64,000 nucleotides of DNA from Ramazzottius varieornatus (GCA_001949185.1 BDGG01000004.1:2732912-2796911), one strand, 5' to 3'. Shown: positions 3,468-49,100, counted from the stretch's first letter. Notes: generated by a model not told the origin, from the letters alone. Numbers and translations: made by a program.

Positions 3468-6058
<2,591 letters not shown>

Positions 6059-9400: not shown

Positions 9401-12216
9401 TCTCACAATCTTTGTATTACAGATCAGGGAAAAGGAGGAAAAGCTGCTGGAAATGAAGTTGGAGATGGAGTCGCAGAAAGCCAACTACGAAGCGAAGATC
9501 ATCCAGTTGTCTTCTCGAATAAGCGAGGTGGAGACCGAGCGCAATGCCTTCCTGAAAGAAGTGAAGTCAAAGAAGGGTGGCTTTGACCCGGAGAAGGTGA
9601 AGGAGCGACAGCTCAAGTACGAACACGAACTTGAGGAGCTTAAACGTCAAGTTAAGGAGCAACAACAGAAAGAGAATGAGTACAAGAAACTCCAGAAAGA
9701 CTTCTCGGCCAACGAAAAGAAAGTGACGAACCTTTCACAAGAGATCGCCAATTTGAAGAAGGTGAGTAACATCAACGAATTCCCCGCAAATGTTTGAGCT
9801 GACGTAGCTTTTGCTTTTAGGTTCGCTGCGAGACGATCAGAAAGGCCGAGCAAGATTCCAAGAAGGCGCGTGAGAAAGATCAGCAGCAGGCCAGAGTGAT
9901 GAGCCAGAAGGAGAAGGATGTCCGACAGCTGAAAAAGCAGAATGCCGATCTGAAAGACCAAGTAGTGCAGCTGAACAACAGGGTCGTTCGTTTGACGGCT
10001 GACTTGAAGGTGGCAAAGCGAATCCAGAAGACTGGTATGTCGGATCAAGTGGCCGGACGAGTCAACAAGGCATCGGGTATTGTGGACGAGGGACTGTTGA
10101 AACGCAACTGGGAGGACTTCTTGAAATATGTAATTCAAATGACACCTTTCTCATAACCGTCTTTCTGCTGTTAAATGTATCTTCCTCCTTGCAGTTCCGC
10201 GCTGTGACGTACAAGCGAATGCGTCTGAAGCAGTTCGAGAAGCAGTTGGCCACTTACAGCGAGGTATGCTACAATGAGAACCTGGTTTGTACAGCGAGAA
10301 CGACGTTGTTTGTCAGTCTGGTTAAATGTCTGTGGTTTCGGTGTTTAGGAATTGCGTGCACTGCGGGAATCTTCGCGGGACTGTGAGAGAAGACTGGCTT
10401 TGGCTGTGGAAGCACGTGTAAGTAGCTTCAACTACGCTCTGTTTATCCGTACTTTAGCATTGAGCATCATCTGGTTAGGATTTTACGGCTGTGGAGATGC
10501 TGAAAAGCCAGCTGGACGACACCCGATCCACCATCCACTTTTTCGAACAGAAGAACATGGAGGTCCAAAACGAGACAGCTATCTGTGAAGAGAGTCCCGA
10601 CGAATCGAACAACATCAGTCCAGACCACATTCAGACGTATTTCCCCGACGAAGTGGCCAGTCGCTACTTTCTAGACAACATCATCCACCTATGCATGAGC
10701 CAGGTACCTTCATTCAAACCATCCAGGGGATCGTTCGAGTACATATCGACGCATTTCTTTGCAGCAAGAGCAAATTACTTTGCAAGAAACCCGAGCGCAG
10801 TCCAAAGCCGCCGAGCATGCCATCAAGTTACGAGAGCTTGCTGCTGTTCACACAATTCTGCAGGGGCTCATCTTTGATAGCGCTGGCCAGTCCAAACTGA
10901 CAGCTGCCGAGTAAGTCATGACTATCGTAAATATATCGTAAGTCTGTTGAACTATCAGAAGCGATTTACTCATGTCATTCGAAGCTTTGGTGATGGTTTC
11001 TCGTCGTTCTGCAGGTTTCTCATTCGAAATCTCAAACCTCTTCTCTCCGCTGTTTACCTTCTGGTTATTGTGGTGCTGTGTGTGTCGCGCTCTTCTTCCG
11101 TCTTGTCGCTGTTTCTGATGCCTTTCTCTCCGCTTTTTCTGCTGACTGTCTCTGTGGTGTTCTTCCTTTCCGTGAGGCTGATACTTGTGGCTACCCTTGT
11201 TTTACGCTATGTTTGTGACGTGTAGTGTGGCCAGGAATTTGGAGCAGAATGGAGTGACGGAACTCAGTGCCGAAGACGTGCTGGACAAGATCAAGAATAC
11301 CCCGGTCTATTCGCGCACCGTCGGTCGCACTAAGGTACAATGCTTTTCCTGATCAAGATCCTCATTGTTAAACAAGACAAGCGTATCTGAAAAAAATGTT
11401 GCAAATGGGGAGGTATGCAAACATACCTGACAAGATCGTTTTCTCAGTGGCGCACTCTGTCGGCCATCAACACTGAATGCTTGCGCCACTTGGGAAAACA
11501 GTCTTGTCAAGTTTGTTTGCCGAGCTCCCAGTTCTTCAGTTTTGGAAAATATTTCAACAAAATATTAGATGCAGTCAGTGTTATGCACAATTGTTCTTAA
11601 CGTGCTTCTCGCTTGATAGGCTCGACAGTTGACTTTGAGTGGACCAGAAGACATGCTGGTGTCCGACAAGTCTCGATCTGGCTCGTCGACCTCATCGACC
11701 GCGGCAGGAAGCCCCGTTTCGAGCTCTGAGGACGATCATTCTTCGGTCGCGTCCAACTCTTCTGGCGTGACTGCTGACCTGAATTCACTGTCACAGAAGA
11801 TGCTGCCTCCGAAAAATGTCCCTATCAAGCGTGTCGTGCAGGATATGAAACTGCACGCCAAGAATGGCTCGTAAGTGTGTCAATCCTTTTCTGAGCAATG
11901 CTTCCGCTGTTCTAACCTGGCTTGTGTAAACAGGCACGGTCATCTTCCGTACGTCCCTCCCCTATCGCCAAGTTTGCTGAATGGTCACGAAACGCCGTCG
12001 ACACCTCTTCGCCCTCCTAACCGTTCCATCAGCATGAGTGAGATCTCTCCCTCCCACGCCAGAGCCTCACCTGGAAATGGATCTTCCTTGGAGAACATGG
12101 CGGCACCTCCAGCCACCCCGTCGCTGGGTAAGGTCCGTCGTCATGCGTGCCAGACTCAGTTGAATATGCTGCCGAAGCCGTCCACTTCCGTACAGACTCC
12201 GGTTGTCAGAAGATAA
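6478..12216 (+). CDS. KIF21: Kinesin-4 family, KIF21-like motor with coiled-coil stalk; no WD40 tail found
   Basis: SVRVAVRVRP; [19 protein letters not shown]; SSRSHAIF; [45 protein letters not shown]; [24 protein letters not shown]. Confidence 0.88.
11406..11530 (+). mobile_element. Intronic palindromic element copy 1 (GTGGCGCA-N27-TGCGCCAC family), in KIF21 intron
   Basis: TGGGGAGGTATGCAAA...TTTGCCGAGCTCCCA ends; GGCGCA 11449-11454, TGCGCC from 11482; arms TGACAAG/CTTGTCA and GTTTTCTCA/TGGGAAAAC. Confidence 0.8.
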
Positions 12217-12568
12217 AGAGCCGTGTTTTGAGCTCTATGTTTAGGTTTGAGTGCCTTGGTTAGTTAAGTATTAGTTCGTTTTTGAGAACTTCGAAATGAA
12301 ATTTTGAGTGTATCTGCCGTCCTTTTTGTATATTGCTCTCCTTGCACTTTCTGTGTTACATTTCAGAGACCAAATCATTTTTGTCTGCCTCGACCTTTAC
12401 TATCACCTATAGTTCCTTTTACATCCGAGATCAGTGCTCTACCAATGTTTTATGCGATTTGACTTTTGAGTTGCACATGGTTTTTGATTTTACGGATACA
12501 GTTTTGCAACGGAATAATTATGTGTCAGGCTTGTATGAAATAACGTTTTCTGCGTTCTGTCGACTGCT

Positions 12569-15176
12569 TCACTTGTAAACATTCTTGAAAATTCGACAAC
12601 TTCCGTACAAGACACCGTTGGTGTCTTTCGCTTGTATGCCAACCCCGTTCGGGTCGCGCATAAAGGTGAGGCTTACGCGGAAGAAGAATCGTTCGCCAGT
12701 GGTTTCTCCTCTCTTTTCCTCTGGAATGTGGAGATGCAGTTGCGAGAGGCACTCCATAGTGTCGACCGAGACGCTTCCTTTCTGTTCTACGTCTGAGAAG
12801 AAGACTCGAATGAGGATGCTGTTCTGAGAGAAGGTCGCGGCGCAGAAGTGGTGAGTGTAGGCTTGGTCCGGCGAACCCGTCAGGTACTCGTCTTTCTGGA
12901 TAATTGGAATGAAGGCGTTCTTAATGACGGATAAATTCTTGACCGACCTGCAAAGTAGCCGGTATTATGCATCCAAACTTTTTTATTCAGTACTTTATCG
13001 TTTTTACATTGTTTCTAACGATACTGTTCGTGAGTACTCAGTCACTTACAGGCTTTTCATGAAGTCACAGTGCCCGACAGCCGTCACACCAATTGTGTAG
13101 GCACTCTGCAGAGTTCGAAAAGTTTCGAGATTTTTCACGGTAGAGGTGCCAGAAAGAGCCTGCTTCAAAGTTCCGACAACAGGAAGGATTGCCTGATCGG
13201 AATGTCTTTTCATGCGAAGGAAGGGAAGCGATTGTTCGAGCAGACCGCGGACATAGGGATTGTCGGCTGTTCCGCCAACCGCGTACACTGTGACCAGACC
13301 ACCATGCAGCAAGTTTTCCTCTCGAAGTACTTCCGTGATGAGATCAACCAGCTTGTCGATAAAGGGTTTGAAGATGTGCCGAACCAACTGTGTGTCCAGC
13401 ATTACGCAGTTATTGACGCTATCGTAGTAGTGGCCTTTCTGTTTCACCTTTTCCGCCAGATGTTTGCCTGAAATGCAAAACACTGATACATAAATACCAA
13501 AAAACTGTACAAGAAAATTCAGTAATCGTAGCGCAAGTTCCTGCGGTTGATATGAGACGTTACCAAATTTGCGCTTGAAGTGGGCTTCGAATGAAAACGG
13601 TAAATGACATGCCAGTTTCTGGTTCAGTTCTGCGTTGCGCTTGGCCTTTTCCAAACAGTTGAGGATCTCAACAAAACCTTCGTAATTTTCGGCTTTGTAC
13701 GTGCTAAGGACTTTGCTTCCAAAAATATCCTCCATAATCTTGTACAGCGCCGTCGATATCGTTTGGCCTCCAACAGGGATCTTTCGAGAATAGGCTGGAC
13801 AAACTACGTTCCCGCAGATGGTAAAGTATGAGACTTCCGTGTGGTAGGTTCCGATATCCAGTAGAAGGAACCCGGAAGTACCGACGTTCCTCTGCGATGC
13901 ACGTTGATTTGCGGACCATGTCGCAGGACGCCGGGGCCGGTTCTCTAGTGGAGCGAGGAATGTCGCGATGACGTCACGTTTGTAGACGGTCGAGACGTTC
14001 ATGTAGTTTCGACAAACCTGCAAGAAGAAGTCAAGATTAATACATTTCATATACTGTAGCGGCCAAGCCATTTAGTGGGCAGCTACGTCTCACCAGAAGG
14101 AACGGGTTGAAGCTTGAACACAACAGATTTACTTACGGGGAGGACCATGCTTTCCATGTTGTTTCGAACTTCGATATCGGCCACAGTAACATACCACTTC
14201 ACGTCTCGGACATCCGCAGCTGATGTTATTATCAGCCTTTGCGTGAGATCGTCCAATACCAGACTTCGAAGCTTGTCTAGAACTGATCTGAAAAGACCGG
14301 CGCCGTTCACACCCACTGCGCAAGTGCCGTTTGTTATCGGCTGCGCCAGTTGGTCCTTCAAGGAACACAATAATAATGATAAACAGATTGTACTACACCA
14401 CTACTTACAGGGTTTCCCCGTTTTTCTGGACTTCAGATGTATTATTTCCTTACGTTTGAGGAGAGCAAGGCGGGAAAATTCTCCAAGTAGAGCAGCTTCT
14501 TCCGCTGCCCGGAAGAGCAGCTCAAATGATCTTTGTGGGCTTTGTATCCGATCGCCAGGAGGTCTCCGCTTGGCTTGGCCAGCAGCATGTCACTCAGTGT
14601 CCGGCGAGGATCTTCTTTCGGACAATTCTGACAACCTAGAAAAGCAGGTCAATATGGGGCGTCGGCAAATAATTGATTTCATCAACAACTGATTTCATCC
14701 GGATCGTTTTCTAAGTGGCGCACGCGGTCGGTCAAGAACCAAGACATTGTGCGCCACAATGTCGCAGTTCTGTCTGGGCGAAATCGTTTGCCGACGTCCC
14801 ATGCCGACGTACATTCGGTTTTTATATCCGCCTGCATAATTAGAAAGACAAACTCACCCATCCAATTGTCTAGAACATGGTAGACAAGAGATCCGCGGCT
14901 GTCGGTCCAGCCATATCCGCAGCATGAGTATGTGGCTCCCAGGTGAATGACACCCACGATATCTCGCTTGGTAATCGAGCCGGACTGAGACAAGGTTTTG
15001 TGAATCTTGGACGTCAACGGAAACACTGTGTCCACTGTGGTCCGGGGATAGTCTGTGCTGCTGATATGAGATGCGAAAATACCGTCCACTTTTTTCCTCG
15101 AAGCAGTAGCTCGATGACGAGCTATCGAGGAGGGTTCACTGGAGGACCCGCTTCGTAAACGTAAACTGACCGCCAT
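12569..15176 (-). CDS. Divergent Hsp70-superfamily protein, HSPA12-like, multi-exon
   Basis: Actin/Hsp70-fold motif remnants VGVIHLGATYSCCGY, WYVTVADI, FLLLDIGTYHTEV, VYAVGGTADNPYV, and C-terminal RVSLTF...IQAKD as in HSPA12; alternative start at 15200. Confidence 0.7.
14655..14801 (+). mobile_element. Intronic palindromic element copy 2, in HSPA12-like intron (antisense to host); best-preserved TIRs
   Basis: TGGGGCGTCGGCAAA (14655) / TTTGCCGACGTCCCA (14801), 14/15 inverted match; core GGCGCA 14717-14722 + 27 nt + TGCGCC from 14750. Confidence 0.8.
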
Positions 15177-15458
15177 TTTGCCGACACAATACCGAACCAT
15201 TCAACAATAGACTCAACGACGAACATCATTGTTTCTGACAAGTGAGTTTATGATAGTTCAGTGCATTGCGTGAAACGAACAAAAATCACGATCGTTCATA
15301 AAACTATGGCGACTTATGGCTGTGAAAACGCATTGAAGCGAACCCAACCGTCGATTTACGATAAGATAGCACCTCTCTCCTAAGTTAATCACAGCCCTTG
15401 AGGCCGTTCCGAAAATACCGCCTAATGTGTAGAGGTATTCCAATCAGAGCACGCTCAG

Positions 15459-18401
15459 TCAATTTCTGGAATTTATTTCCCCATAAAGGAGAAAACGGTG
15501 GTCGAGAGTGGGGCAACTTAACAGATCTGGTGCGCCAAGCACCACTTCATCATGCACCGTGAATTCAACGGTGGGCTGAACCGGTTGCTTCTTCGGCGCT
15601 GTGGAACAGAATCTCGCGGGACATGCCATGGAATAGAATAACCACTCACGGATATCTCGAACACAAATACGCTGGTACAGAAAGAATGGGATATCACAGG
15701 CACAATAATCCTGAAAAGTCCTATTGCCTATGATTACAGGTTCTTCCACCTTTTCTTCGACTTCAACGTCCCAGAAAGAAGACTTGTTCTCCTTCCCAGC
15801 TTGCGAATGCCGCCGCTTCTTCTTTCTTCTAAACTTGTCGGAGTCTTTAGTCAGTCCCAACATGAACGGTACATTCAAGTTATCCCGGACAGACTTTAAA
15901 AACGAGTTGGCTGCTTTGTTATCTGCCGAGCAACACTGGACGGCGGACAAATCGAACGGATGGGCTTCCGTGTTGAAAACGAAGCTACCCGAGGACAAGA
16001 CGCATGATGATTTTTCTCGCTCCAAGACTTCGGCAGTCCCATCGTCAGTGTGGATGAAGTTGTCCTCGTCGAACAACAGGTATAGGTACTTGATCGTTTC
16101 CGCCAGGAAGAACGACTCCATGCGGTTCTCCAGGTTATGAGTTTCAACGTTCTTCACCTGCAAAACAAAATCTTCGACGTCGCTCCATTACTATTCGGGT
16201 TCACCAAATCAAGAAGAATATACCGTAGCGTATCCACAGGGAACTCGAGCTATCGTTTCGATCGATTCGACAATTTGCGCTCCGAAGTGCAGGAGCATTG
16301 GATCTTTAGTCGATCGGTATAAGTGGTAAATACTTTCTATCAGTTCTGCAAGTGGAAATAATCGAATGAATATTACGAAGTCGGTTCCAAGCACACTACG
16401 AATAACACGTACAGTACCTGGTCGAAGCGGATAACCTTCGCGGCCACGAACAACTTTAGCTTTGACAACATCGAAGAATTCCGGAGTGAAACCGTAGTGT
16501 CGCCATAAGTTCATGTAGTGCATCAAGGAGCGATACGCAGGTTCGATATCTCCAATGCCCGCCAGTATACCAGGCCAGAATGCTTCCAATGACTGGAAGA
16601 AGGCCATTGTGATGTGTGTGGAAAGAGATGAGACCCAGAAAAACCTGCAGATCAAACATCAACGTTAGTTTTCCTGCTGAGCAAGAGCACAGCTAAATAA
16701 AACCATCCGGTCTTTTTGCGTACCAGTCATCGTGGTTGACGTATTTGTGAATAGCGTCCATGCTATCTATCAGTAACAAAAAACCAATCCTTGTCGAGGA
16801 ACAACCGCTGACAAGTTATGTAGAAAAAGGTTCCGAGACAAACCGAGAAGAATGGCCATCAGTTCGGGGCTTTGAAATGCAGCAGCGCCCTATAGCGAAA
16901 GAAGACCATTGGTTTCACGAAGCACGAATTGTATCGAAGTATCATTCATGCCTTAGCTAAGTACTCGAACATGGAATCCACTCCTGCAGAACAATACATA
17001 AATGTGGCAAGTCAAAGAGTTCGACGATTGAGCAAATTAAGGTCCTTCTCAAAGCACTTCTCGCTTACCGGCTCCGATTCCAGCGTCAAGAGCTTTCCAT
17101 TGGCCCGTCTGGACGTCAATGTGGTTACCCAGCTGTAAACTTTGCACGTTAAAAAGTCACCGATGTCACCCACTAGGTACGACAGAATGATGGGCATCCG
17201 AACTAACCAGTCCAAATTTGGTCCTTGTGGACCACATGGCTCGGACAGCCCTCATAGCGACGTCCTCGTACAGGGGATTGCCCGTAAGGCGACTAAGAAC
17301 CCCGAACTCCAACACGAAGGTCGCTACTCCAGCTGTACAAGTCACTGGGGTCTCCTCCTTCGGTACTCCATGAATTAAGTTCACCTAAGAACAAGAAAGC
17401 TTTTCGTCATATTGTTATAAAATGATGATTGGGATCAATATATGACAAAGCAATCCGGGAGTCTGTCCAAATGCAAATTCAGCCATGATGCGTCCCACTT
17501 ACAGTACCGTATGGCATTCCCGTGTTGGTATTGAATGCTACAGGAAGAAATTTCGCAATTACATTGGTTACAAGGCCGGGAAAATCGGAAAAACCACAGA
17601 GTTGTACCGATACCCGGAAGCAATCTTTGCGCGGCATCTTCCGCTAGTTGGAGGAGCCTTCCAGAACATGGCCATTCCGCCTCAACTTGCATTTCGATAC
17701 GGTGAGCCATAAGATGTGCAGCGAGTAACCCACCGACCACTGTATGGAAACGCATAATGTCCCATCCCTCGAGAACCCAAATGTCACGGACTCACAGTAT
17801 TCCAAAATTAATCTACGATCATATCAATCGTACCTGCCTCTGATGTTGGTTTCGAAGACGGAAACGTCCACATCCTTGTCGAAGCGTAAAGTGCTGGTCA
17901 AGTGATTTGTCACTCTCCGAAATTCAGTGTAGTTCCCCATAACTGCGAGTGTGTCCAATGCATCGATCAGCGTCAAGGAGTAACTGAAACAAAACGATAC
18001 AATGACACTGCGTTTGCAGACATTTAATAGGCGGCTGCCACAGGACATGGACATCCTACTAACCTTCCCCAGGTGTCGACGCCGTTGCATGTAAGTGGAC
18101 GGAGCTCGTCGTAGGGAAATGCATTGTGCAAATACGAATCGTATGCATGGTAGAACATTTTCTCTACGCGATGCCTGCAACGAAGACAATTTGCACAGTC
18201 CGTTTGTTATATGCCATTACCATAGTTGAACTAAGCGCCGGAAGTGTGTCGAAGATGCAAGGCTTACCTATAGTGTTCCTGTCTTTGACGGTCGAATTTG
18301 ATGTAGCCATCTGCTCTGGGCACGCAGAAGCTGGACAATATCAAAAAGAGCGGTACAGAGCTCCGGCGGTACTGCCGCAGTGAATCGGAAACCATGACCA
18401 T
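15459..18401 (-). CDS. EDEM2: ER degradation-enhancing alpha-mannosidase-like protein 2 (GH47), multi-exon
   Basis: MFYHAYDSY...YDELRPLTC; [22 protein letters not shown]; VSVFETNIR; [14 protein letters not shown]; [10 protein letters not shown]; GYPLRPELIES; [21 protein letters not shown]; FNTEAHP. Confidence 0.95.
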
Positions 18402-18977
18402 GAGGCTTTAGTGATAATGGATACTGCGGCAGATGAGCTTCTGGAAGTGTCTGGAGCGCCTCCGACGTCTTAGCCAGTGTAAAGGATCAAGAAGTCTTGT
18501 AGACCGTTGCGGACCATTTTTGTCCAAGAGGATAAAGGCAACACTGGCAACACGCGTCTCTTATTCCTACTCGAACCGTGGAACGTTTGATATCTTGAAG
18601 ACAGATAGGATTATCTATTTGATGGCGCAGAATCCGCTGAATTTCAGATCATCATTCGATTTTCACGTTCCTCGCATGACATGACATAATGTCATCAAGT
18701 TGGCTCTCTTACCGATATTCGGCGTCATAACGAGATCATTGGTACCGGTACTCGTAGCTCATAATTATTTTTCTTCGCCATCTTCTCGTAATTCCGAACT
18801 TGCAGTTTATTTGTGAGATCCATACTTCTCGAGCTTCCGTACAGACATACTCTTACGTGCAAACCACATCGCATCTCGTTCCCTCTTGCTACGACGACTC
18901 CGGCGAGGACATATTGACGGACAGTTTATCCGATAGAAGAACTTCGGAAGCCACGGATCGCTCAAGAGAATCCAACA

Positions 18978-19510
18978 ATGGAAGCAGATCCAGAACTTAC
19001 TAAGGTACCTTATACCGTAAAGAGCCCATAGAGTGCCAGTTATGCAGCTGTCGTTGCTTTCCACTCAGGAAAGCTGAACGTTAGCGTCGGAAGACATCCA
19101 TGTAATCACGTTCTGACACTTCGCGTACTGTATAAGCAGTACACGTGTATACCGTTATATTGCAGGCTTTTCAAGAGCTACAGGCGAAGAAAGTCGAGGC
19201 TGTTCAGCATCTGGACTCTTTAGATGCCAAGATCGCCGGTACTGCCCGCGCAGTGAAAATTTCGGAATTAACTTTGGCGGAAGTGGCTCAACAGGACGCG
19301 TCTGCTAAACTGTATCGAAACGTCGGACGAGCGTACTTTCTGTCGTCGAAAGACAAGATGGAAGATCTGTTCCGCTCGAAAGTGACAAGATTATCCGAGA
19401 ACATTCGTAACTTTAACGACAGCAAAGTTGCCATAAACAACGAACTGAAGGAAGCAGAAAACTCGATCCGCGAACTGATAACAAAGAAACGACAAGGACC
19501 TTCCTCATAG
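18978..19510 (+). CDS. PFDN1: Prefoldin subunit 1 (2 exons)
   Basis: MEADPELTK|AFQELQAKKV...LYRNVGRAYFLS...LKEAENSIRELI; GT-AG intron 19005-19165. Confidence 0.9.
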
Positions 19511-20629: not shown

Positions 20630-20665
20630 GTTCGAATAACCGAATGACTTATTCGAACATCACTA
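20630..20665. repeat. 10-bp perfect inverted repeat followed by ATCACTA; possible transposon-end remnant
   Basis: GTTCGAATAA (20630-39) / TTATTCGAAC (20649-58), 9-nt loop; another CGAATAA at ~20602. Confidence 0.4.
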
Positions 20666-23207: not shown

Positions 23208-26200
23208 ATGAGCGTTCGTGAGAGTAAGCGCCGGCAGAAGGGAAAGGAAGAGCTTCCCAAAATCGATCCATCCGAGGAAGTAGCCGACGACGTGATTAAG
23301 GACATCGTCAAAGGCCGCACAGGTAACGTTTTCTGCGTCAGTCGGGGATCCTCGAGAGTGATCTCAGCAAATTTGGCTAATTTACGCTTAGTTCTGCGTG
23401 CGGAGAAGTTGTCCTCGGGAAAAAAACACTTGACATGATTGTGGGTCGAAAATTCGCTCCATGTTGGTACAGTAATCGAGCCGGAAGTGCCGGAACTTCA
23501 AGAAACCGTACGCGAGCACTGTGGATGGTTTGACATTGAGGAGCTACGGGAGACGAATATTAGGGAATTTGGTCGTGCGAAGTGGAACGGAGAATTGATT
23601 TGTCTGGCGATGGATGGAAGACAAAGTGATTTCTCTAATGGATTGAACTTGTTCCCCGTCGGGCTCGACGGTCGGAGACACGTGTCGGCACTTTTTCCGC
23701 TCTAAGTGGTTGAAACCAGCGCAGCATACGATTGTCTTCGAGAAACCTTTTCGGAGTTCCAGGCTCAAAAATCTTGCATTCACATGTGGCTTGCATTCAC
23801 ATGTGGCTTGCATTCACATTTCCGAAATGCGTATCAATATAATAGCATTTGAAAGACCGGCAAACGAAACGTATAGGGCCGATATTCCCAGTGGCGCACT
23901 GTTTCAGCCAAAGACAGTGGAAACATGCGCCAGTTGGATTACTGATCTTGCACGTTTCATTTGCTAACCTCCCCTCTTTGTACTTGTGCTTTTTTCGAGT
24001 CCCTTTCGCATTACGAAATGACATTGTTGATATGGTGGGAACATAAGGAGGACAACAGTTTGTTGATATTATGTGAGGTAACACTAGGAGCAAAAGTAGC
24101 GATTGCTCATTATGGACCACATGGTCATGCAAATTAGCAGAGAAATTTAAGTGACATGCACAGGGTCACAGTGGTGCACTTCACTATCAAAGCATCCGTC
24201 ATATGCTGACCCAACTTCTCTTTCTTCGGCACTTATCAGTGCTAGCATAATTGCTATATTGATGTGATCCATATTTCTGTGATGCAAGTTTGCCGTCGAG
24301 CTAATTCACCGACAGCCGACGGCCAGAAATACAGCCTGTGCATCTCTTTGATGGCTTTTAACTTAATTTTTATGTGTACTGTGCTGAGGCGACCAAAGTT
24401 TCCAAATGTGGGTCCGTCACGGCTGAAACTCTTGTCCGCGTCGCTATCTTCACGCAGATACATCATAGAACAAAGAGAATCTTTGAGGACGAACTCACGG
24501 CGTACTGTAAACGGAAGGCAGGGAAGGTCTTGGTTAAAAATAGTAATTGGTGTTTTTGGAGGAGGTCGCCGCCTGGGTTTCGGAACCCGCGCAGAAATCA
24601 CAAGGCTGCAGCCATCGTAATCCTCTTTTGTTGTTTCAGATGAGCAAGAACGAATCCAGCAGAAAGTGTTCGGCAGATGGATCAACTCGCGTTTCGCAAA
24701 GGTGAAACAGGGCTTTTTCTACCATACTGCACGGTTGAAAGTACCGTTTGTCGATATTACGTATGGTCATAAAGAAGAGCTGGTATGAATTATGCTAACT
24801 TAGAGTTGTGTTGACAGACCATCGAAAAGTAACCCTTGTACCTGTGCGTTTGTGATTACCCTGTCAATCTCCCTTGGGCCGTGAAACTACGCGATAGAGA
24901 ATCGCGTTATTACGCTTGTCGTTGTGCATTGTAGGCGAACAGTCCCCTGCGCGTTGATGATCTCTTTCAAGACTTCCGCACCGGAGTAACCCTCGCTGCT
25001 TTGGTGGAACTCATAACGGGGATCAAAGTGGTGATTTCATCTCAAATCTTGATCCTTTCTTTATTACTGATAAATAGCCTTTATTGTTGTTAGCCTGTCG
25101 AGAAGGGTCGTACCCGATTCGCCTGTGCGTCGAATATCTCGTCGGCGCTTGAAGTCCTCCAGAACGAAGTGAGATTCCACTTGACAATGCACTCATCAAG
25201 TGCTCACCGACTGCCGATTGCGTTCTCACGCCTAACCTTGTGATTGTTTTGCAGATTAAGCTGGTGAGTGTCTCTACCGAGGATATTGAAGAAGGCAACA
25301 GCAAGCTGACTTTAGCGCTCACTTGGTCCATCATTCAGCACTATTACGTGAGTTTAAAGCATCCTGCCGAATAATCTATACCGTATTTTCTATATTTCGC
25401 TCGAGAAAGAACCGATCGCCTGTTTCATGAATGTTTTCCTTGAAATGTAGGTGAAACGCCTTGGTAGTACCGTCAGCGACCTCCGAGTGAACAATTTGGA
25501 GAAGACTCTTCTATGCTGGTGTCAGTTAGCCACCAAGGGGTAAGTGCTGGACATTCAGGGAAACTTCCGCGTATATAATCGTTACAATGAACGATTTTAT
25601 TTCTTCTAGATATGCTCATGTTGACGTCAAGAACTTGCATACCTCCTGGACCGACGGTCTAGCCTTTAATGCTGTGATACATAAATACCGGTAACTTTCG
25701 GACTATCGGCTTTTGCGAGAAGTGCGTTAATTGAAATTGCGGAAGTTTCATCGACGCTGTTGTTTTTTACCAGTGAGGACCTGTTCAAGTACAGTGATCT
25801 GTTAAGCAATACGGCTAAAGTTAACCTTCGCCACGCCTTTGATCTAGCAGCACAGCACTTGGACGTGCCCCGCTTACTGGAACCGGAAGGTAAGTCTTCA
25901 TTTCTGATCTGCTGCCTCGTGATTGTGCTCGATAAATTAGTTCGTTTTTTAGATCTTCTACAAAGTTATGTGGACCAGAAAAGCATTGTGATATATTTAT
26001 TGTGTCTTCTGGAGTCGCTACCTCACGAGAGCATGGAAATGAATGCGGTGACATCGGTTTCCATGTTGGAAACGAACGTACGCTAAGCAATTTTTTATAG
26101 TGCTGGCTGTCTGCTGGGTAACCTTTAACCTTGCCTGATTCTAGCCGGCGGCAGGCGATGCGGATTCCAACCGAACATATCAGAGTTCAGCGGAAGCCGT

Positions 26201-39015: not shown

Positions 39016-39644
39016 CCACCATAGGCGATGTGGTAACAGTTGCAATTATAAAATTACCTTTACTCGGACTGTATGTGAGGCGAGATGCAGCGAGAGAAGT
39101 CTAGCTGAAGAGCATTATAATAACTCCTGCAGGTCGCGCATTCATTCGAATACGGGCAGAAGGTGAGCCGTTTTTTTGTTTCACTCGACAATATCCATCA
39201 ACAGCATCACCCAAAAAGCAAAAGCGTGAATCGAACAAGAAAGGAAAAAATCTATGCTGTTTGATGGTCATTTTGTAGTGACTATGGCTGCTACAGTCGT
39301 CTAGTCGAAGCAGTACGCGGTCGTAATTTCTTGCTATAAGGTAGGTACTAGCCCATCAGTCACGGTCAACCATGAGGCCTACATACAAAGTACGGTTTGC
39401 ACTATAGGTTCTACCTGCTGCCATTATGACTGTCAAGTCCGCAAGTGGGTCAAGTGAATCTACGGCATAGTTTTCTGATAGTTTCGTCATGACTTTCATT
39501 AACCGTGAACTTCAAGAAACGAAACGAACGCCATGATAATCAGTTAGCCTCCTTGCCCAACTGTTCGTCTGCCTGCCTGCCCACAATAGATTTCACCGCA
39601 CCGAAAAACTAGACGCCCATGTTGCCTGGCTGGCCGGCAACAAT

Positions 39645-41499
39645 ATGGGCACCTTGTGGAGAACGCCATGGATAACTCCAATCGAAATGCTTACCTTATT
39701 GCTGGTCAATATATTGTCGTTCGCCATGGGCGATATGTTCAATCTTGGCGGATCGGCATCTTCGGACTATCTACCGCGAATGCGGCCGGACTTCGATCTC
39801 AACGATATTCCATGCGACATGCGAGACACCCCTACATGCAATAGACCTGGAAAAGCCTACCCTTGGTACGGTAGGTACTTTGTTACCAGAATCAGTCATA
39901 TGGAAGTGAAATAAGCTCGGCGAATGGAAACCACTGATGGTTCTTTTCATCGCCTTTCTGTGCAACGTTGATGATAATTTACATTGCAGGTACGGCATGC
40001 AAAACTACATTCGGGATAACGGTGGGTTCATCAAGCGCATGTACGGAGACGCACGGTTCGATCGGGGACCCTCGAAAGTTCGCGCGCAAGGACCTGTGAC
40101 GAGCTCCTCAACAGACCGAATGTCCAGAAAGGATGACGGAGTGTGAGTCGCCTATTGCCTAACACTTGCAAATCGTAAAGTTTTATTGCTATTACCGCTT
40201 TGATTTTCGTAGTAATGCTTGTCCATCAGAACAGTTCGTGATGACACCGTTCTGGGCAAACAATAGCGATGGCCGCGCCCTGGCCGTCGTCAACTTCCAC
40301 CCGTTCGAACAAGCCATCCAACAGGAAATTTGCAAGTGAGTATTAGCTTATGCAAGACTTACCTTATGTCATCGTACATTAAACTTAAGACCGTATACTG
40401 AATATTAAAAATCATTACAACAACAGTCACTGATCATAATTTCCCCAATTCAGGTCCGGAGTCCAAGGACGCTGCAGAGATGGATGTGTCTGCGAGCAAA
40501 AATATGCTTGGTACCGGCTTTTGGCTTTCGACCCAACGAACGAATGCAAAGGAATATTTATGGACTGGTTTCAGTTCCCTTCTTGCTGTACATGGTAAGA
40601 ATTTCGACAGACTGAGTGCGCTACTTTGGGCTTGGTTATACGTGTTCGTCGCAGTTCAAACTTGATCAGGAACGACGAAAACGTTGGTCTCTTGTAGCCG
40701 TTGTTATGACTTGGTTTCTCGAGAAGTCCCTATCACCGCACCATCGATTATCATCGCCGTCCAGTCCAAAAACAGCTCAGTGGTCAATCAGGAAGGAAAA
40801 TCCGACCCAGATGCCATCATTGAGCCTAAGATTGGCTCCATACCATCTGTGAATCTGGACACAGGTCCAGTCGACGGCACAAGCCTGGAGGATGACTTTA
40901 GCATAACCGCAGTGAATATTAGGCCGTCGACGCGCAACCATTCGACAACCAGCACAACCTCTTTCCCGCAGTTCACCACTGTGACACCACCGACCACGAC
41001 CTCAGTATTCCGAAGGAACACGCTTCCAGAAGTCCAAGCAACGTCGACTTCCTCGTGGCATACACCTGTCAATACGACCATGTTCAGCACCAGTACTAGT
41101 TCTTCGACGGAGTCGGACCTGGCTACCGGTAGTCTCTTCTTTCCCCTTAACGTCTCGTCAGGCAGTAAAGTAATCTCGGCGGAACTGGTTCAAAGCTCCT
41201 CTCCTCGTAGCGTTGTCAACCCGCGAAAGGCCATGGGTAGTGGCCTCCCCAACCGACTACGTTATCTTACGGTACCTCAGACTAAAACCTCTACCAGCCT
41301 TCCCACGACAAGTTCCGCGTTCCCCGTAACTGATGATCCGCTTATTAACTCTACTGATCTTCCTCGAACAACTTCTAATGTAGACACGTTAAACCATTCT
41401 ACCGATAATAATATCATCTCTATATTTGTTGAACAAGAACCCTCCGCTCAAAAGAAAATGGAGCAATCTGTTCGGAGCAATCGCATTCCACGAATGTAA
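39645..41499 (+). CDS. Spaetzle 3/4-like cystine-knot ligand with signal peptide and long Ser/Thr-rich C-terminal extension
   Basis: Signal [15 protein letters not shown]; PCD...[30 protein letters not shown]; [17 protein letters not shown]...[10 protein letters not shown]...[43 protein letters not shown]. Confidence 0.88.
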
Positions 41500-41904
41500 A
41501 ATCTTTATTATTACCATCTCCTTCGCGTTTACTGTTATCTAACGTTGCAAATTTCCAAGCGCGACGCACATTGTTCGAAATACCTTCACTGTAACACTAT
41601 ACTTCCTTCTTCTCGGCTTCGAACCTCCAACAGTGCAGTTTTTACCGAGATCCACGAGCTAACGAACAAGACCGAGGTCTTCAGCCGAAGCGACCTATGT
41701 TGCGACACGCGCGATCCTCTTTCGGTTCTTTTGAAACGACTTTCGGACGTGGTGAACATTGGGATTCACTCTTAGATTTTGGTGAAACTTCAATCGATGT
41801 ACATCAGTGTAGACATCCGCGTTAGTGTTTACACTGCATGAACCTGTTCTTTCTTCTCACATAAAACGCACAGTTTAATGTAAAATAAAAGAAGCTGGAA
41901 ATCA

Positions 41905-42733
41905 CTAATATCCTCCTTGACCTCCCTGGCCTCCTTGAGGACGAGGACCAGATCCGCGACCGTATCCTGAAAATCCGCGACCATATCCCGAAGAGGGAGC
42001 ACCTCCACGCTGTAACCGGAAACAAGAACGTCAATATCAAAAAACATTGAGCAGTACGTCGGCAAATTATTTCACCTAGATCACTATCACAAGTGGCGCA
42101 TATTTTGAATGTTATTAGCTAAGACCATGCGCCACTCGGGAAATTTCGTTTGTCGACGTCTGGAATGATGTTCAACAAGAATGCAAAAGTTCCATTGCCA
42201 CTTACGTATTCCATCTGTTGTCCGGGAGCAAGACCAAGGTCGTCTTTCTTCTGTTCGGTTTTTCTGTAGTCGTCACGGTTATCGTATGGTCTTGCTTCGT
42301 AAGCTCCAGCTCGCTGCAAGGGCTTAGCTCGCTGAGTCTCAGCACGGGCCTTAGGCTTCATGGTGGCAGGTACAATCTCGGTGGGTAAATGGAGGTATTC
42401 CCGGATGTATTCAATGCCTTCATTCGTCAGGTACCAGTAGAAATGTCTCCACGCAAACTGCTCCTTCACGTAGCCTCGGCTTTTCATTGACTGCACAACA
42501 ATGAATATAAATCAATCAATCAAGCCTTACCAATAATGTCGTACAGAATACCGGGTAGCACAGCTTACAAGGTCCCCCAGTGCGCTTACCTGAAGACATT
42601 TCATCACATGAAGATTCGGCACCGTTGATATAAGAGGGTGCTTTGCAAGGTGCACATCCTTCTTAGCTACGAGAACACCTTCGTTGAAGAGGTATTCGTA
42701 GATATCCTTGGTGTGCTTCTTGGGCATTAACAT
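41905..42733 (-). CDS. RPS10: 40S ribosomal protein S10 (eS10), 3 coding exons plus upstream non-coding exon
   Basis: [26 protein letters not shown]...VPNLHVMK; [43 protein letters not shown]; RGG/GYGRG tail. Confidence 0.97.
42056..42160 (-). mobile_element. Intronic palindromic element copy 4, in RPS10 last intron (sense to host)
   Basis: Minus strand GACGTCGACAAA...GAGTGGCGCA-N27-TGCGCCACTTG...TTTGCCGACGT; spacer 42101-42127. Confidence 0.78.
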
Positions 42734-43503
42734 TTTCTGTAAGAAGAACAACAGCAACTCGCCCTACGCTCCATCATTAGTCCGTTCATATGGCACCCAG
42801 ACACAACAGCGAACACTTACCGCTCGTTTTCAGGGGATGAGCTGCTTATTGAACAGAACAGATGTTGTGGATGGAACAGATTTACCTAGAGATCAAGTTC
42901 TTCGACGAATCTTCTGATGGAGCTCGTCAGAAAATAATTTTGGTCGACTGCTTTTCCGGCTGGCCCCTCTCTCAACCTGGCGATCACCGCAGCGCAACCC
43001 TTGACATGAGCGCCCGTGTTCATTGCTTTGGTTGGCAGCAGTGTCGAGAACTTTACTTCCGTACGCCATGAAACGCAGCCCCTCACTTCCCCAGGGACTG
43101 CATTCACTGTAAGTTTGCAACAGGGTGACCTTCCGTATTTTAATGAGTCAACTCGACAGAGTCGATAACGGCCAACGGTTGATTCTTGATTACACTGGTT
43201 TGAAACCGGAATCTTGCCGGAAGTCCATAAACGCAGAGAAACTGAATCAAATTCTGCTGAATGATCACGAGTCCATCATTGCTTCCTTCACTGGTTCGAG
43301 AGTTTCCTGGATGGACGGTACTGCGTGGGATACTGACAGGAAGTCCGGAGTCTGAAGTCACATAGGGAACATGCGAGGATAGGTTGCACGAATGGTACCT
43401 GCGAGTCTGAGCAGCTGCATGTGCGTTTATCACCCGTGGTGGTCTGATCTCCTTCTCGCAACTTCATAGACGTATTTGACAAGTATCTCCCCGCACGGTG
43501 ATC

Positions 43504-44997
43504 ATGGATGCGGAAAACCTACCGCCAAGCGATCCGGGTGAGTGGCGCGTCGAGGGCCTTTGATCGTTCTTTGCATCATTACTAACGCACATTCAACCCT
43601 ATATGTATACGTATACTGCGGAAAGGAAGTCCTGAGAACATCTTGTCCAACACGGTGCTATCTGTGCGAACCTACCTGACTGAACTACGTCTTTTGCAGA
43701 GCTGCGCAAAATAATCGAGACGCTGGCACAATATGTGGGGAAGAATGGGACGCAGTTCGAGGAAATGGTCAGGACAAGAGAAGCGAACAACCCGCAGTTC
43801 TCTTTCCTTCGCGGCGGGGACTTTTACAAGTACTACGCAAACTGCGTTGCTGCCGAGCAGAAAAAACTCCCCGGACGTCCACCTTTGACTCCATCGACTC
43901 CTGTAAGTACGCCGAACAACCTAACACCTGCAAGCTCTTCACGCTTCTCCCAGGCACCACCAGCTGCAGCAGTTCCTCCGACCACCCACGGACTAGCCCA
44001 AGGTCCCTCCATGCCTGGCACGACATCTTTCGGCAACACGACGGAACCTCCGGCTGCAGTGATACCTCAACTGCCAGCTTTCTCGGGACTTCCTCCTCAT
44101 ATCCAACATCAAATACAGCAGCAAATGGCGCTGAGGTTCGGCAGCCCGCCGCCTCTCTGGCAGTCTTCAGGTAACGACGGCCATCTGAAGTTGGTCGACA
44201 AGCGCGATAACTTTTAAACGGAAGTGCTTTGCGTGATAGGTACCACAGATGCCAGTCGTCTCCCTCAGGCCATGGGAGACCAAACATTCCCACCGCAGAA
44301 TCAGCAAGGTCTTAACTTCCCTCCGCCGTCCATTCGTCCGCGGTTCAATCAGCCACCTGGGCAAAGTCCCCATATGTTTGGTCCGCCACCTAGTTATCAA
44401 GGTGGCATGGGAGCTTTTCCTCCTCCCGGCCTTGTCCGGCCTGGATTTGTCCTTCCGGCAGTGCCTCCTCCTTTTCAAGCACCGCACGAGATGCCGGCCA
44501 GTGAGGCACAACGACCTGAGTCTCGTCCGTGGTATGAACTTCCGGCGGGACTGATGCTGTCGCTGGTGCGGACAGAGGACTTCAACTACAGGAGCCTGGA
44601 CCCGAAGGCCCTGGCTATTCCGCCACCTCAGCCCATCACGGAGAGGATACTTCGAGCGGTCGAAGCGTTCTACGCTCCGCCAAATCCTTCTCAACCTCGT
44701 AGTGCCGAAGGATGGGAAAAGCTTGGTACGCATTTTTTAACAGCTGTATGGTGTACTATCAAAACGTGCTCATGTTTTATTCTTCCAGGTCTGTACGACT
44801 TCTACAAAGCCAAAGATGCGGCCAAGAAGAAAATCGGACGAGGAGAGAAGGTGCGGCAGTACAGACCTGGACAGTCTCGTTCTCCGAGTCCTGAATCAGA
44901 CTATTCGAGGTCACGGTCCCGCAGTCGGGGTAGGACGGATTCTCGTTCAAGATCTCGATCGATGTCGCCTAAACGTCGGAGGAGGAGTAGATCGTAA
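43504..44997 (+). CDS. CHERP: CHERP-like splicing factor (SURP domain, Pro-rich region, CHERP C-terminal conserved domain, RS tail)
   Basis: ELRKIIETLAQYVGKNGTQFEEMVRTREANNPQFSFL; PWYELPAGLMLSLVRTEDFNYRSLDP...RILRAVEAFY...EGWEKLGLYDFYK; RS repeats. Confidence 0.85.
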
Positions 44998-45340
44998 CGT
45001 TTTTCACCTAAAACAATTGACCAAACAAATGCGGCACTGTAGTGTGTTGAGAATTGCCCAATGCCCATGGGGCAATGCCTAAATCTGCGAGTCCGTAAAA
45101 CTTTTTTTGTTCCTTGTTACTGTTTTACCCATTGGCCGTGAAAAACTGTAACGGAAGTGTAGTCTTCAGAGTTTAGACACGCGTTGAAGACGTGCCAGCG
45201 GAGTGTTCAGACTTCAGAGTCTAGACTTGATAGACAGGAGGCAAACTCTGGCCACGCCCTGCTGTAAAGGTGTTATACTTATACGGCATAATATCGAGTT
45301 GATTGATTTGATCGTCCAAACGGAATTTCAAACTTCGAAG

Positions 45341-45547
45341 CAGTGTTCGCCAGGTAAGCATTTACCAACCTTTCGAATGGCTTGCCAAATGGCTGCTGAA
45401 TAATGATGGTATAAGCAAATCGCACCAAAAATCGGTGACTTGAATAATTCTAGCTGATTTGTGTTCGGATTTGATTGAGTGTCTGGTCTTGGGGCAAGCT
45501 TTGGTGTCTCAGAGTACGTCGGTAAAAGTTTACCTTGACGAACACTG
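45341..45547. mobile_element. 207-bp non-autonomous DNA transposon (MITE) with ~30-bp TIRs and 9-bp TSD
   Basis: Left CAGTGTTCGCCAGGTAAGCATTTACCAAC vs reverse complement of right CAGTGTTCGTCAAGGTAAACTTTTACCGAC; direct repeat ACTTCGAAG at 45332-45340 and 45548-45556. Confidence 0.85.
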
Positions 45548-46194
45548 ACTTCGAAGTCCAGTCTGCAGTCAGCGGGAATCTTCCTTTGATTATCGTAGTA
45601 ACATTTTAATCTACAACTTCCCGTTTGTTTTTCTGGGTGGCCAGATCCTGGACGATGTCAGCGGGGAACACCAAAGAATTTGAGAAAGTGATACGCCGGA
45701 AGAAGATGGAAAGTTGATCGCGGATCTTGCCATTCTCAGACCGGAACACTAAACCGAGCACGTTCATATATTTGACGGAAAAGCCATCTCACCCTCCGGT
45801 ACTGTTCTTTGCCGCTGGCACTAATACCTTTTGTTGTTCACCTTCGGGACAGTCCAAGTGAGCATTGCGAGGACAGATCAGCTGACAATCACTTCTTCCA
45901 AAGTACCCGCACAAGGTTAGTTAGGGAATGATGAGCATAATGTCCGTACATGCGCGCTGCATTCCTCATGGAAGGTACTGATGAACAAAACTTCCATTAG
46001 TCTGTCCGACACTCTTTCTCGCAAACAAAACACGAACATCGTGCGATACCGTATCGTACCGCAAGATGTCCACGCACTGGCGCGCACCCACGCAATATCT
46101 CACAGGATTACAATACCAGTCTATCAGAATCTGATGATTTACCATGTTCGAGTATACAACATAAAGCAGTGCGAACATGGTTTTTGCAGGAAAA

Positions 46195-49100
46195 ATGTCT
46201 TTGCCGAGGTGGAGGAGGATCGCTCGAGGAGCCGGTATCGTTGGTGGGATAGCAGGCGCGGGTTATGGCGTATTCATGCTTTATCGAATGCGGGATGTGA
46301 GAAAGGTGCGTACGAACTCCTCTTCTAAGTTAGTTACTCACTAGGTTACACTCACTCCGCTAGGCTGCACATGGCCGAGCTTCTCAAATGACCCCTGACA
46401 TCTTCGTCGTTCGTTACAGGTTTATGCAGAATCGTCGGTGTCCCGGAGTAAGCCGAAGGGCTATTTGCCGTACATTCCGAGCAGGGAAGAGCAGGTGAAA
46501 GCACTGCAAACCGTCCCGGAGTACGATGTTCTTATCATTGGCGGTGGCTGCACAGGCACCGGTGTAGCGTTGGATGCTGTCAGCCGAGGTAAATCGTTCA
46601 CTGTAACTACCAGGTGACATTCCAGTTTACAGATTTACTTTTAGGCTTGAAAACCGCACTGGTCGAAATGGATGACTTCGGAGCCGGCACTAGCAGCCGA
46701 AGTACCAAGCTGATCCACGGCGGTGTTCGGTACCTCCAGAAGGCTATCTTAGGTCTTGACCATGAACAGGTACCTCCTGAGTGGTATTGAACAGCGCTGC
46801 AGCCGTGCAGCGAATCTAGTAATTCATGTTCATATGCTTTCAGTACAAAATGGTGAAGGAGGCCCTTACCGAACGCGCGAATCTTCTCGACATCGCCCCG
46901 CATTTGTCGAAACCCTTGCCTATTATGCTACCAGTTTACAAGTAAGACACTGTACAGACTTCGTTCTCTGGTGTTCGATGTCTTGTTTCCGAGGGAAGAT
47001 TTATATCGATTCGCAACTTTCATTTCTGCTGTATGTGCAGATGGTGGCAAGTTCCTTATTACTGGGTTGGTATCAAGGCCTACGATTTGGTCGCTGGTCG
47101 GCGGAACCTAAAGAGCAGCTACTTCCTGTCCAGTGAACGAGCGCTGGAACTGTTTCCCATGTTGAAGAAAGAAAAATTATGCGGCGCACTTGTTTACTAT
47201 GACGGTATGTTGTTTCTGACAAGTTTATAGTGAAGTATTTATAGAGTTCTGTGATTATTTAACAGGACAACACAACGACGCCCGTATGAACTTGGCCATT
47301 GCTTTGACTGCAGCCCGCTTGGGGGCTAATACCGTCAATCACGTCAAGGTTACCGAACTGTTGAAGGAACCGAATGCCGAAGGAACGGCAATTGTCAGAG
47401 GGGCTCGTCTCCAAGACATGGTTACTGGTTAGTCTGTTGTTTCTTTAGATAATATGTATCCGTACAGTACAAACCTTCCTGTGATGGAGGGGCGTTGGGC
47501 AAACAAACCGCACAAGATCGTTGTTCCAAGTGACGCACACTTCCAGCTGATAACGATAAGTGTCTGCGCCACTTGGGCTGACGAACTTGTGTGTTTGGTT
47601 TGCGTGGCTGTGATTACATCGTAATGTAAATTTGTTAATTTCGCTCAGGCAAGGAATGGAATGTGCGGGCTAAATGTGTGATCAACGCCACGGGTCCATT
47701 CACCGACGGCATCCGGCAGATGGATGATCCCAAGCAGCCCAAAATCTGCCAGCCCGCTTCGGGCATCCACATCGTCCTGCCAGACTACTACAGTCCGGCC
47801 AACATGGGTCTCCTGGATCCCAATACCAGTGACGGGCGTGTCATCTTCTTCCTTCCCTGGGAGAAGGTGACGCTGGCCGGAACGACAGACTCGCCCTGTG
47901 AGATCACCCACCACCCCATACCGGCTGAGAAAGAAATCCAGTTCATTCTCAAGGAGGTACGAGGGTACCTGGACAAGTCCGTGGCGGTCAGACGTGGGGA
48001 TGTTATGTCGGCATGGGCTGGTATCAGACCTCTAGTCAACGATCCAAACTCCAAAAAGTCTACGCAAGAAATTGCCCGTAACCATATCATTCACGTTTCC
48101 GACTCGAAACTCGTGACCATTGCTGGTGGTAAATGGACAACTTACCGGCTGATGGCGGAAGAAACAGTTGATGTCGCCATTCAAGCGTGCGATCTGAAGG
48201 TAGGGCAAGTATGGAACCGAAGAGATAAAAAAAGTAAAATTTTTGTGCTGTTGGAAAACCTTTTCCAGAAATTTTACTTCGGAGCTGATTCTGTGGGGTA
48301 TACTGGTACGATTTCTTGTTACAGCCCACTCAGCCAGAATGTCAAACTATGGGACTGATTCTCGACGGAGGCCACGAATGGACACCCACGACATACATTC
48401 GTCTCGTTCAGGACTTCGGCCTGGAGAACGAGGTGGCACAGCATCTGGCCCGAACATATGGAGATCGCGCTTACAAAGTTGGTCGCTCCTGCAAGCTGAC
48501 AGGTCGTAGGTGGCCGGTGGTGGGGAAGCGTCTGCACGAAGACTATCCCTACCTGGAAGAAGAGATTGGTGTCGCGGTGAAAGAGTACGCCCAAACGGCT
48601 GTTGATGTAATAGCGCGTCGTTTCCGCCTGGCCTTCATCAACACTCAGGCCGCACTCGAGTGCCTTCCGCGCATCATCGATCTGATGGCTGAAGAACTGA
48701 AGTGGTCCAAAGAAGAGAAAAAGGTAAGGAGTGATTCACTCTCCACCTGCGTTCGACAGGTGTCATCTGTTTATTTTCTCTAGGCCCAGATGGAGCAAGC
48801 TGTCGAGTTCATCCACAAGGATATGGGACGAAGTGTTCAAGCTGAATCTCGCAATGTACCGATCAACTTCACGCTCGATGAAGTCAACAGATACCTCTCG
48901 CAGTTCAAAACACTGGACAAAGAAAATAAGGGATACATTACGATTCCTGATATCAGAAGAACACTGAAGGTACCGAACAGCGCTAGATCCTTTTTGGTAG
49001 TTTCTCAACTGGCGCACATTTCCAGCCAACAACCACGAGAAAGTGCGCCTTTTGAGATAACCTGGTTCAGTTTTTGCCTACGTCCCAAATTTAGTTTTCT

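Follow-up and report, generated by a model that had tools for sequence, protein, structure and literature searches.

Why do six short palindromes, lying in introns of unrelated genes, keep one pair of inverted motifs at one fixed distance? The question is raised by a stretch of 64,000 nucleotides of the Ramazzottius varieornatus genome (C4:2732912-2796911; the whole stretch is called the window below, and positions in it are counted from its first letter), in which the original prediction had recognised a dispersed intronic element built around an invariant 27-nt spacer. We scanned the whole genome, 55,842,812 bases in 200 contigs, as well as the window. The six palindromes are decayed copies of ramVar1-7, an already catalogued Sola-type miniature inverted-repeat transposable element (MITE) of this tardigrade, and within this element two mirrored 10-bp core motifs, AAGTGGCGCA and TGCGCCACTT, have decayed much more slowly than the sequence around them. 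We believe, with a probability of about 0.6, that ramVar1-7 is the relic of a single burst and that its core pair has been constrained after insertion as DNA, most likely as a site bound by protein.

Exact matches to GTGGCGCA-N27-TGCGCCAC occurred in the window at 11447, 14715 and 42093, and the shorter pattern GGCGCA-N27-TGCGCC gave further matches at 23893 and 49011; the observed match counts were reached in 0 of 100 shuffled windows. A hidden Markov model (HMM) of the family, run with nhmmer, returned exactly the six copies, the one passed over by the exact patterns having a single core mismatch. Pattern matches and HMM thus bore out the six intronic palindromes where they had been predicted:

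11408..11529, plus strand: copy 1, full length (122 bp) with both termini; 117 bits in nhmmer over model positions 1-122; core pair at 11447-11489, plus strand; DNA fold of -36.2 kcal/mol, z = -8.2
14655..14800, plus strand: copy 2, core pair at 14715-14757; 40.4 bits; fold z = -5.3; left arm broken by extra sequence, termini of the GACGTC variant; antisense to the adjoining minus-strand coding segments
23854..23972, plus strand: copy 3, core GGCGCA-N27-TGCGCC at 23893-23931; 51.8 bits; fold z = -2.9; termini decayed
42053..42162, minus strand: copy 4, core pair at 42093-42135; 43.1 bits; loop reading CTAATAACA on the minus strand
47490..47608, plus strand: copy 5, core pair at 47530-47572; 63.7 bits; fold z = -3.9; left core half at 47530 reading GTGACGCA, with one mismatch
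48975..49087, plus strand: copy 6, core GGCGCA-N27-TGCGCC at 49011-49049; 35.6 bits; left terminus decayed or missing

A consensus of our own, made from copies aligned at 29 loci across the genome, was a near-perfect palindrome of about 122 bp, complementary at 51 of 60 candidate positions. Both arms measure 57 nt, start GGGAGCTCGGCAAAC and run inward via ...CCCAAGTGGCGCAC to GYTTTCAG, and between them lies a central 9-nt loop, CCAATAACA. The usual terminus of the family is GGGAGCTSGGCAAAC; the GACGTC form in the window, from which an end consensus resembling a terminal inverted repeat (TIR) had been read, turned out to be a variant. Curated transposable element (TE) libraries for two tardigrades have been published by Peona et al. 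2024 (Mob DNA 15:10, PMC11071193), and their supplementary tables list ramVar1-7#DNA/Sola as a complete element of 123 bp with a 4-bp target site duplication (TSD) and a 56-bp TIR (PMC11071193). When the printed consensus was compared with ours by eye, the two agreed in length, termini, core, inner stem and loop. Both come from the same genome and have inverted arms of 56/57 bp, termini starting GGGAGCT and a 4-bp TSD, and the core AAGTGGCGCAC, the inner stem and the loop CCAATAACA are all the same, leaving no difference at the level of family identity (PMC11071193). As a repeat family ramVar1-7 is already known, not new, and it matters little as such, being already in a published curated library. 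Peona et al. 2024 list its consensus only: the words 'MITE' and 'intron' are absent from the text, and copy number, intron bias, two-core forms and slow core decay are unmentioned (PMC11071193). Since R. varieornatus and Hypsibius exemplaris have no TE family in common (Peona et al. 2024, PMC11071193), ramVar1-7 arose after the split of their lineages.

The family has the properties by which MITEs are recognised, being short (about 122 bp), devoid of coding capacity and high in copy number, with TIRs and a 4-bp TSD, and it resembles MITEs as generally described (iMITEdb) also in its long inverted arms, its thousands of copies and its genic preference. A match to a catalogued neutral MITE had been named as the finding that would remove the novelty; the element is indeed catalogued, and the word 'neutral' fails for its core. 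No core-free terminus flanking a long insert, which would be a candidate for the autonomous Sola partner, was found in 357 kb. An origin from a tRNA or a short interspersed nuclear element (SINE) was considered and rejected: the likeness of GTGGCGCA to an A box and of the loop to an anticodon loop is no more than a resemblance, and the element has TIRs and a TSD.

The 27-nt spacer resolves into a 9-bp inner stem, a 9-nt loop and the complementary 9 bp of the stem (consensus CGYTTTCAG-CCAATAACA-CTGAAARCG), and the asymmetric centre is the loop. What had been called an invariant directional spacer is, in sequence, the least conserved part of the element, a decayed inner stem with its loop, and the supposedly invariant G9, A16 and C17 were conserved in 85%, 75% and 74% of 75-76 aligned copies. 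In a small sample of 21 pairs of termini the flanks agreed only in a 4-bp register (38/84 versus 30.4 when shuffled, p = 0.025), and reading the rows gave four perfect 4-bp pairs (AAAT, AAAT, AATT and AGTT). A 4-bp TSD is thus present where no common TSD had been seen, in our own flanks as in the ramVar1-7 record (PMC11071193), and it accounts for the tendency of left flanks to have T as their last base and of right flanks to have A as their first. The ancestral element would have been a near-perfect 123-bp palindrome, with two 57-nt arms ending GGGAGCTSGGCAAAC and the 9-nt asymmetric loop between them, and its insertion would have produced a 4-bp target duplication of the ANNT type.

In the whole genome, GGCGCA-N15-45-TGCGCC gave 4,872 pairs, compared to 27 for the reversed-pattern control, and 3,825 of the pairs (78%) had exactly N27. 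By hand count, the first 100 rows of this listing held 79 pairs with N27, 11 with N26 and 2 with N28; the distribution of spacer lengths is a sharp N27 peak with the usual excess of deletions. The longer pattern GTGGCGCA-N27-TGCGCCAC matched 2,277 times exactly and 5,866 times at up to 1 mismatch, with 0 matches for the controls. In 264 kb of unselected sequence, consisting of the window and twenty 10-kb pieces of contig 1, nhmmer found 51 copies, or one per 5.2 kb, which corresponds to about 10,800 genome-wide. These scans bore out the expectation that the family is old and MITE-like, that its copies number thousands and that spacer lengths peak sharply at 27 nt. An HMM of the arms only, which has low power, gave 13 matches, each beside a core-like GGCGCA-type motif. 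ramVar1-7 dominates the detectable interspersed repeats of the 264-kb sample; with the family masked, a blastn self-comparison of the sample left 60 high-scoring segment pairs and no repeat of at least 6 copies. A metagenome scan with the 20-base core pair returned one match, on a contig of 65% G+C that the family HMM did not recognise, and this match was taken as chance.

At many loci a single pair of termini encloses two cores, and arrays with a core-to-core spacing of 82 bp exist (for example C1:1482, 1564 and 1646). The start of contig 1 (C1:1482-1684) has three core pairs 82 bp apart, a tandem array of the inner unit of the element. With such multi-core forms ramVar1-7 is reminiscent of bacterial REP/REPIN sequences, which are likewise short dispersed palindromes, sometimes found in doublets or arrays. 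It differs from them in being a class II transposon with TIRs and a TSD in an animal genome, for which no RAYT-type partner is expected. Near-identical copies with identical flanks at L007 and L008 (two places on contig C24) and at L009 (contig C22) represent recent segmental duplication or haplotigs left uncollapsed on small contigs, and do not count as independent insertions.

The rate at which the parts of the element have decayed differs sharply. Identity to the consensus per position was 0.85-0.97 over AAGTGGCGCA (model positions 39-48) and 0.80-0.97 over its mirror TGCGCCACTT (positions 76-85), and at the inner edge of the core motif a step of one base took conservation from 0.93 down to 0.66. 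As a control for detection bias, the model was rebuilt with the core columns set to N, and the parts were compared by Fisher test. This core-masked model detected 38 copies, none of them without the core, with the following mismatches:

Core: 71/724 mismatches (9.8%)
Outer arms: 378/1,758 mismatches (21.5%), p = 7.5e-13 against the core
Spacer: 301/987 mismatches (30.5%), p = 2.7e-26 against the core

The effect thus persisted when the core played no part in detection. It was also seen within each class of base, as core positions differed from the consensus in 9.0% of cases for G/C, compared to 25.3% elsewhere, and in 11.0% for A/T, compared to 24.3% elsewhere. The genome has no CpG depletion (observed/expected ratio 1.02); CpGs of the arms are among the least conserved sites, and the CpG of the core is 96-97% conserved. 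Counts of exact and one-mismatch pairs over 16 core positions gave a divergence d of about 0.09, implying about 10,000 N27 pairs. Core identity stayed at about 0.90 as the consensus identity of the remaining copy ranged from 63% to 86% (Spearman 0.16, p = 0.28), and core mismatches per copy followed a unimodal, Poisson-like distribution. Two processes that might shape such a pattern were considered and rejected. GC-biased repair within the palindrome does not fit, because G/C positions of the arms are no better kept than A/T positions, and ADAR-type editing as a source of A-to-G changes does not fit, as the preceding base was read to be G at several of the most variable A sites.

While the termini are the best kept part of ordinary MITE families, in ramVar1-7 the internal 10-bp motif pair outlasts them. 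Beside near-intact cores, the terminal 14 nt averaged 61% identity against a random baseline of 43%, and 40% of them reached 70%. Since termini required for cleavage have largely decayed next to near-intact cores, the copies have long been immobile and yet have kept their cores. Per nt, the outer arms had 0.0147 indel events, the spacer 0.0064 (p = 0.007) and the cores 0.0026. Indels being rarer in the spacer than in the arms, the spacing of the cores was kept even though the spacer sequence was free to change. The fixed geometry proposed in the original prediction is supported for the length of the spacer, and conservation well above that of the remaining element is supported for the core and not for the sequence of the spacer.

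Outside recognised copies, the bare core 10-mer was found 4 times in 264 kb, compared to 0.5 expected, and some of these occurrences look like relics of which only the cores survive. In the window, a lone TGCGCCACTT stands at 57070 and another core motif at 53064, both outside recognised copies. Elsewhere, L035:8037 and 8125 form an inverted core pair about 78 nt apart, also outside recognised copies, and L032:4811 has a GTGGCGCA-N27-TGCGCAAC pair without recognisable arms.

Whether the slow decay of the core reflects events before or after insertion depends on the history of the family. Mean pairwise identity among copies was 0.666. Nearest-neighbour identity was 0.764, compared to 0.751 after column shuffling, and mean r2 among 21 variable sites was 0.0184, compared to 0.0174 +/- 0.0018 in shuffled data. 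The best relatives of copy 1 genome-wide were 77-84% identical by BLAST. Over model positions they were 77-81% identical, with an average of 0.766, and so came no nearer to it than the top matches did (0.784) when a family of 10,800 copies was simulated with independent columns. Private variants of copy 1 were present in its relatives at 0.214, compared to 0.239 in the simulation, so that there was no excess sharing. We read this variation as star-like, the outcome of a single old burst followed by independent decay. Because variable sites show no linkage and relatives are no closer than in a simulated star family, the divergence of the arms was not inherited from shared lineages. One burst would have spread roughly 10,000-13,000 copies, each decaying independently since. 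The hairpin has decayed with them: among palindromic position pairs, 525 were broken on one side and 57 were compensated, compared to 42.6 expected if the sides varied independently. Since broken pairs far exceed compensated pairs, which are near chance, the pairing was inherited and not maintained, contrary to the earlier view that the outer arms stay self-complementary.

Because the variation is star-like, we take the slowness of the core as constraint that acted after insertion. Since then, AAGTGGCGCA and TGCGCCACTT, inverted and 27 bp apart, would have accumulated changes at a rate two to three times lower than the remaining element, with their spacing kept. The constraint probably acts on the DNA itself, in the same way on both strands, and not on one strand, since neither an orientation bias nor a G:U preference in sense RNA was found. 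Among 37 copies with an inferred host strand, 21 put CCAAUAACA in the RNA and 16 its complement (p = 0.51), which shows the sense bias of 5 in 6 copies reported before to be a small-sample effect. When one-sided changes were sorted into G:U and A:C in sense RNA, the ratios were 59:51 in the arms, 19:22 in the core and 36:39 in the inner stem. The inverted motifs are sharply bounded, their distance is kept, the spacer is free and the pattern is independent of strand, and for these reasons we regard the core pair as putative paired protein-binding sites. The protein would be sequence-specific, and it could be a factor of the host or a DNA-binding domain of transposase origin.

The same counts bear on the suggestion that the element is a structured intronic RNA, with its hairpin or GC-rich core helix kept for splicing or small-RNA pathways. 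Taken as a single strand, each of the six window copies has kept a better fold than shuffled sequence (z = -2.3 to -8.2), almost every copy is transcribed along with its intron, and the palindromic core motif reads alike in RNA in either orientation. However, the excess of broken over compensated pairs, the even orientation of copies and the lack of any surplus of G:U over A:C all speak against this explanation, and no Rfam family matched in the window at its gathering score, the only hits being generic miRNA hairpin models with 15-30 bits versus cut-offs of 48-150. We consider a role as structured RNA very improbable. A filter on the element instead of the host would arise if the core were a cis site for the transposase and long mobility had propagated only elements with intact cores. 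Internal and subterminal transposase-binding sites are known in several class II superfamilies, and the core does lie within the 56-bp TIR of the curated record (PMC11071193). Such a filter at the time of transposition is quite unlikely, because arm variation is unlinked and private, with genome-wide relatives no closer than in the simulated star family, and because the cores have outlasted the termini.

The constraint reading itself meets several objections, and its main rival is a purely neutral relic, in which the core would be slow through lower mutability or an unrecognised technical effect, with neither selection nor function. A unimodal, Poisson-like distribution of core mismatches fits a uniformly lower mutation rate equally well, and a bimodal one would be expected if only some copies were used. 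Core identity does not depend on the decay of the rest of the copy, as a uniform rate effect would give, and in every other feature the family matches a decaying transposon. It is also a heavy demand that purifying selection should act on about 10,000 dispersed sites. Moreover, the core rate is judged against the arms and spacer of the same element, the unbiased sample is only 264 kb with 51 copies, and the test for intron position given below rests on a noisy home-made coding predictor that missed several RNA-verified exons. On the other side, base composition, CpG methylation and detection bias are excluded as sources of the slow core by the comparisons above, the drop in conservation at the inner edge of the motif is abrupt, and the length of the spacer was kept while its sequence was free. 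To our knowledge, there is also no mutational process that protects a mirrored 10-bp block. We therefore regard the neutral relic as possible but doubtful. The excess conservation of the core, the kept spacing and the concentration in introns are real in the sample, the core also genome-wide. The mirrored 10-bp pair whose sequence and spacing resist decay in thousands of independent copies is new to the literature we searched, as is the intron concentration of ramVar1-7. If the core pair is a real binding site, it would show transposon co-option with unusual clarity, in a genome that is small and tractable and that offers thousands of independent replicates for measuring selection; gene editing by DIPA-CRISPR is established in R. 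varieornatus (PMC11175437). If it is a mutational cold spot, it would matter for the neutral-decay models by which repeats are dated.

Transposable elements are known to carry transcription-factor sites, such as the rodent SINE B2 with CTCF sites and the C. elegans MITEs CERP2 and CELE2 with the m1m2 pair in germline promoters. ramVar1-7 is like these in that a repeat spread a short motif, in this case a pair at a fixed distance, to thousands of places and the motif was kept better than the rest. It is unlike them in that its putative sites lie in introns, not in promoters or between genes. As for the protein that might bind it, the core part AAGTGGCGC agrees at 8/9 bases with AGGTGGCGC, the strong 3' stretch of the consensus for Drosophila CTCF, but the mismatch falls on the G of 'AG', which is a strong feature, and the upstream CC is shifted (Holohan et al. 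2007, PMC1904468). The consensus is strong in the fly, with AGGNGGC shared (Holohan et al. 2007, PMC1904468), and CTCF has been inferred in the ancestor of Panarthropoda (Pauli et al. 2016). An 8/9 match to one of many known motifs may serve as a weak lead only. It is unlikely, in our judgement, that the burst placed about 10,000 convergent CTCF-like AAGTGGCGCA pairs in introns, held there by purifying selection as sites of a zinc-finger or transposase-derived protein. If it did, a transposon would have built a wiring of gene-body chromatin on a genome-wide scale.

For two copies, the position within introns could be followed with RNA, as spliced contigs of four runs from four studies were placed on 41851-47850; because spliced forms are present in these runs, they amount to transcriptomes:

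42010..42205, minus strand: RPS10 intron holding copy 4, 196 nt, skipped by the contigs, with CT..AC ends
47427..47647, plus strand: GPD2 intron holding copy 5, 221 nt, skipped by the contigs, with GT..AG ends

The other two introns of RPS10 are 99 and 84 nt long, and copy 4 has 43 nt of non-element intron on each side; the exon at 42206-42490 matches Pfam S10_plectin with E = 1.9e-23. In GPD2, where the exons flanking the intron of copy 5 match Pfam DAO and DAO_C, six of seven other introns examined measure 56-114 nt. Taken together, copies 4 and 5 are flanked on each side by 40-63 nt of other intron sequence and make up about half of their introns, which argues that they entered pre-existing introns. 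Without the element, these two introns are as long as their neighbours. Copies would thus lengthen host introns by about 120 nt, as shown for these two, and ramVar1-7 is the reason that many introns of R. varieornatus exceed their neighbours by about 120 nt. Copy 6 probably lies inside an intron of about 154 nt, the borders of which were read by eye. Introners are reportedly MITE-like transposons that create new introns, and ramVar1-7 resembles them in being MITE-like and in being almost confined to introns, in genes that are unrelated. It differs in filling about half of the two RNA-verified introns and not the whole; copy 6 is ambiguous in this respect.

In order to place copies without RNA support, a dicodon model was trained on long open frames, and the gap between the nearest predicted coding segments was measured at each locus. 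At 33 MITE loci the median net gap was 187 nt, compared to 813 nt at 5,000 random non-coding positions, and gaps below 300 nt were found at 70% of MITE loci and 17% of random positions (Mann-Whitney p = 1.4e-9). The noise of the coding predictor affects the MITE and random sets alike. In the R. varieornatus genome introns make up 22% and intergenic DNA 43%, and the lineage has lost non-coding DNA (Yoshida et al. 2017). As short gaps are in excess although intergenic DNA exceeds introns, ramVar1-7 is clearly concentrated in introns. Either an insertion preference or better survival in a genome short of intergenic DNA may have produced this concentration, or the two together, and both the A/T-rich target of 4 bp and the lineage's loss of non-coding DNA may have contributed.

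Several smaller observations were made around these introns. A 162-nt intron at 43537-43698, in the plus-strand gene 43137-45281, starts GGTGAGTGGCGCG, which puts a core-like GGCGC at the 5' splice site, and further in it reads ATCTTGTCC, resembling the right-arm motif. It may hold a copy decayed beyond the reach of the HMM, as nhmmer finds none there. In runs X6 and X9, contigs match copy 5 from the core on (47513 and 47526), whereas the left arms that precede the core in them belong to other copies. Such contigs are assembly chimeras through the shared core, and they show that the X6 and X9 libraries contain unspliced intron sequence with ramVar1-7. Of the gene labels given earlier to other parts of the window, KIF21 and dystrophin were unconfirmed, and so was 'HSPA12-like', as the 338-aa open frame beside copy 2 (13049-14062, minus strand) had no Pfam match at E up to 0.01. 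The minus-strand exon at 15498-16187 codes for the end, on the C-terminal side, of a domain of glycosyl hydrolase family 47 (mannosidase). Finally, in the first GPD2 intron (45797-46189), the skipped stretch began at 45913 in three runs (274 nt) and at 45797 in run X6 (391 nt), which suggests an alternative 5' splice site.

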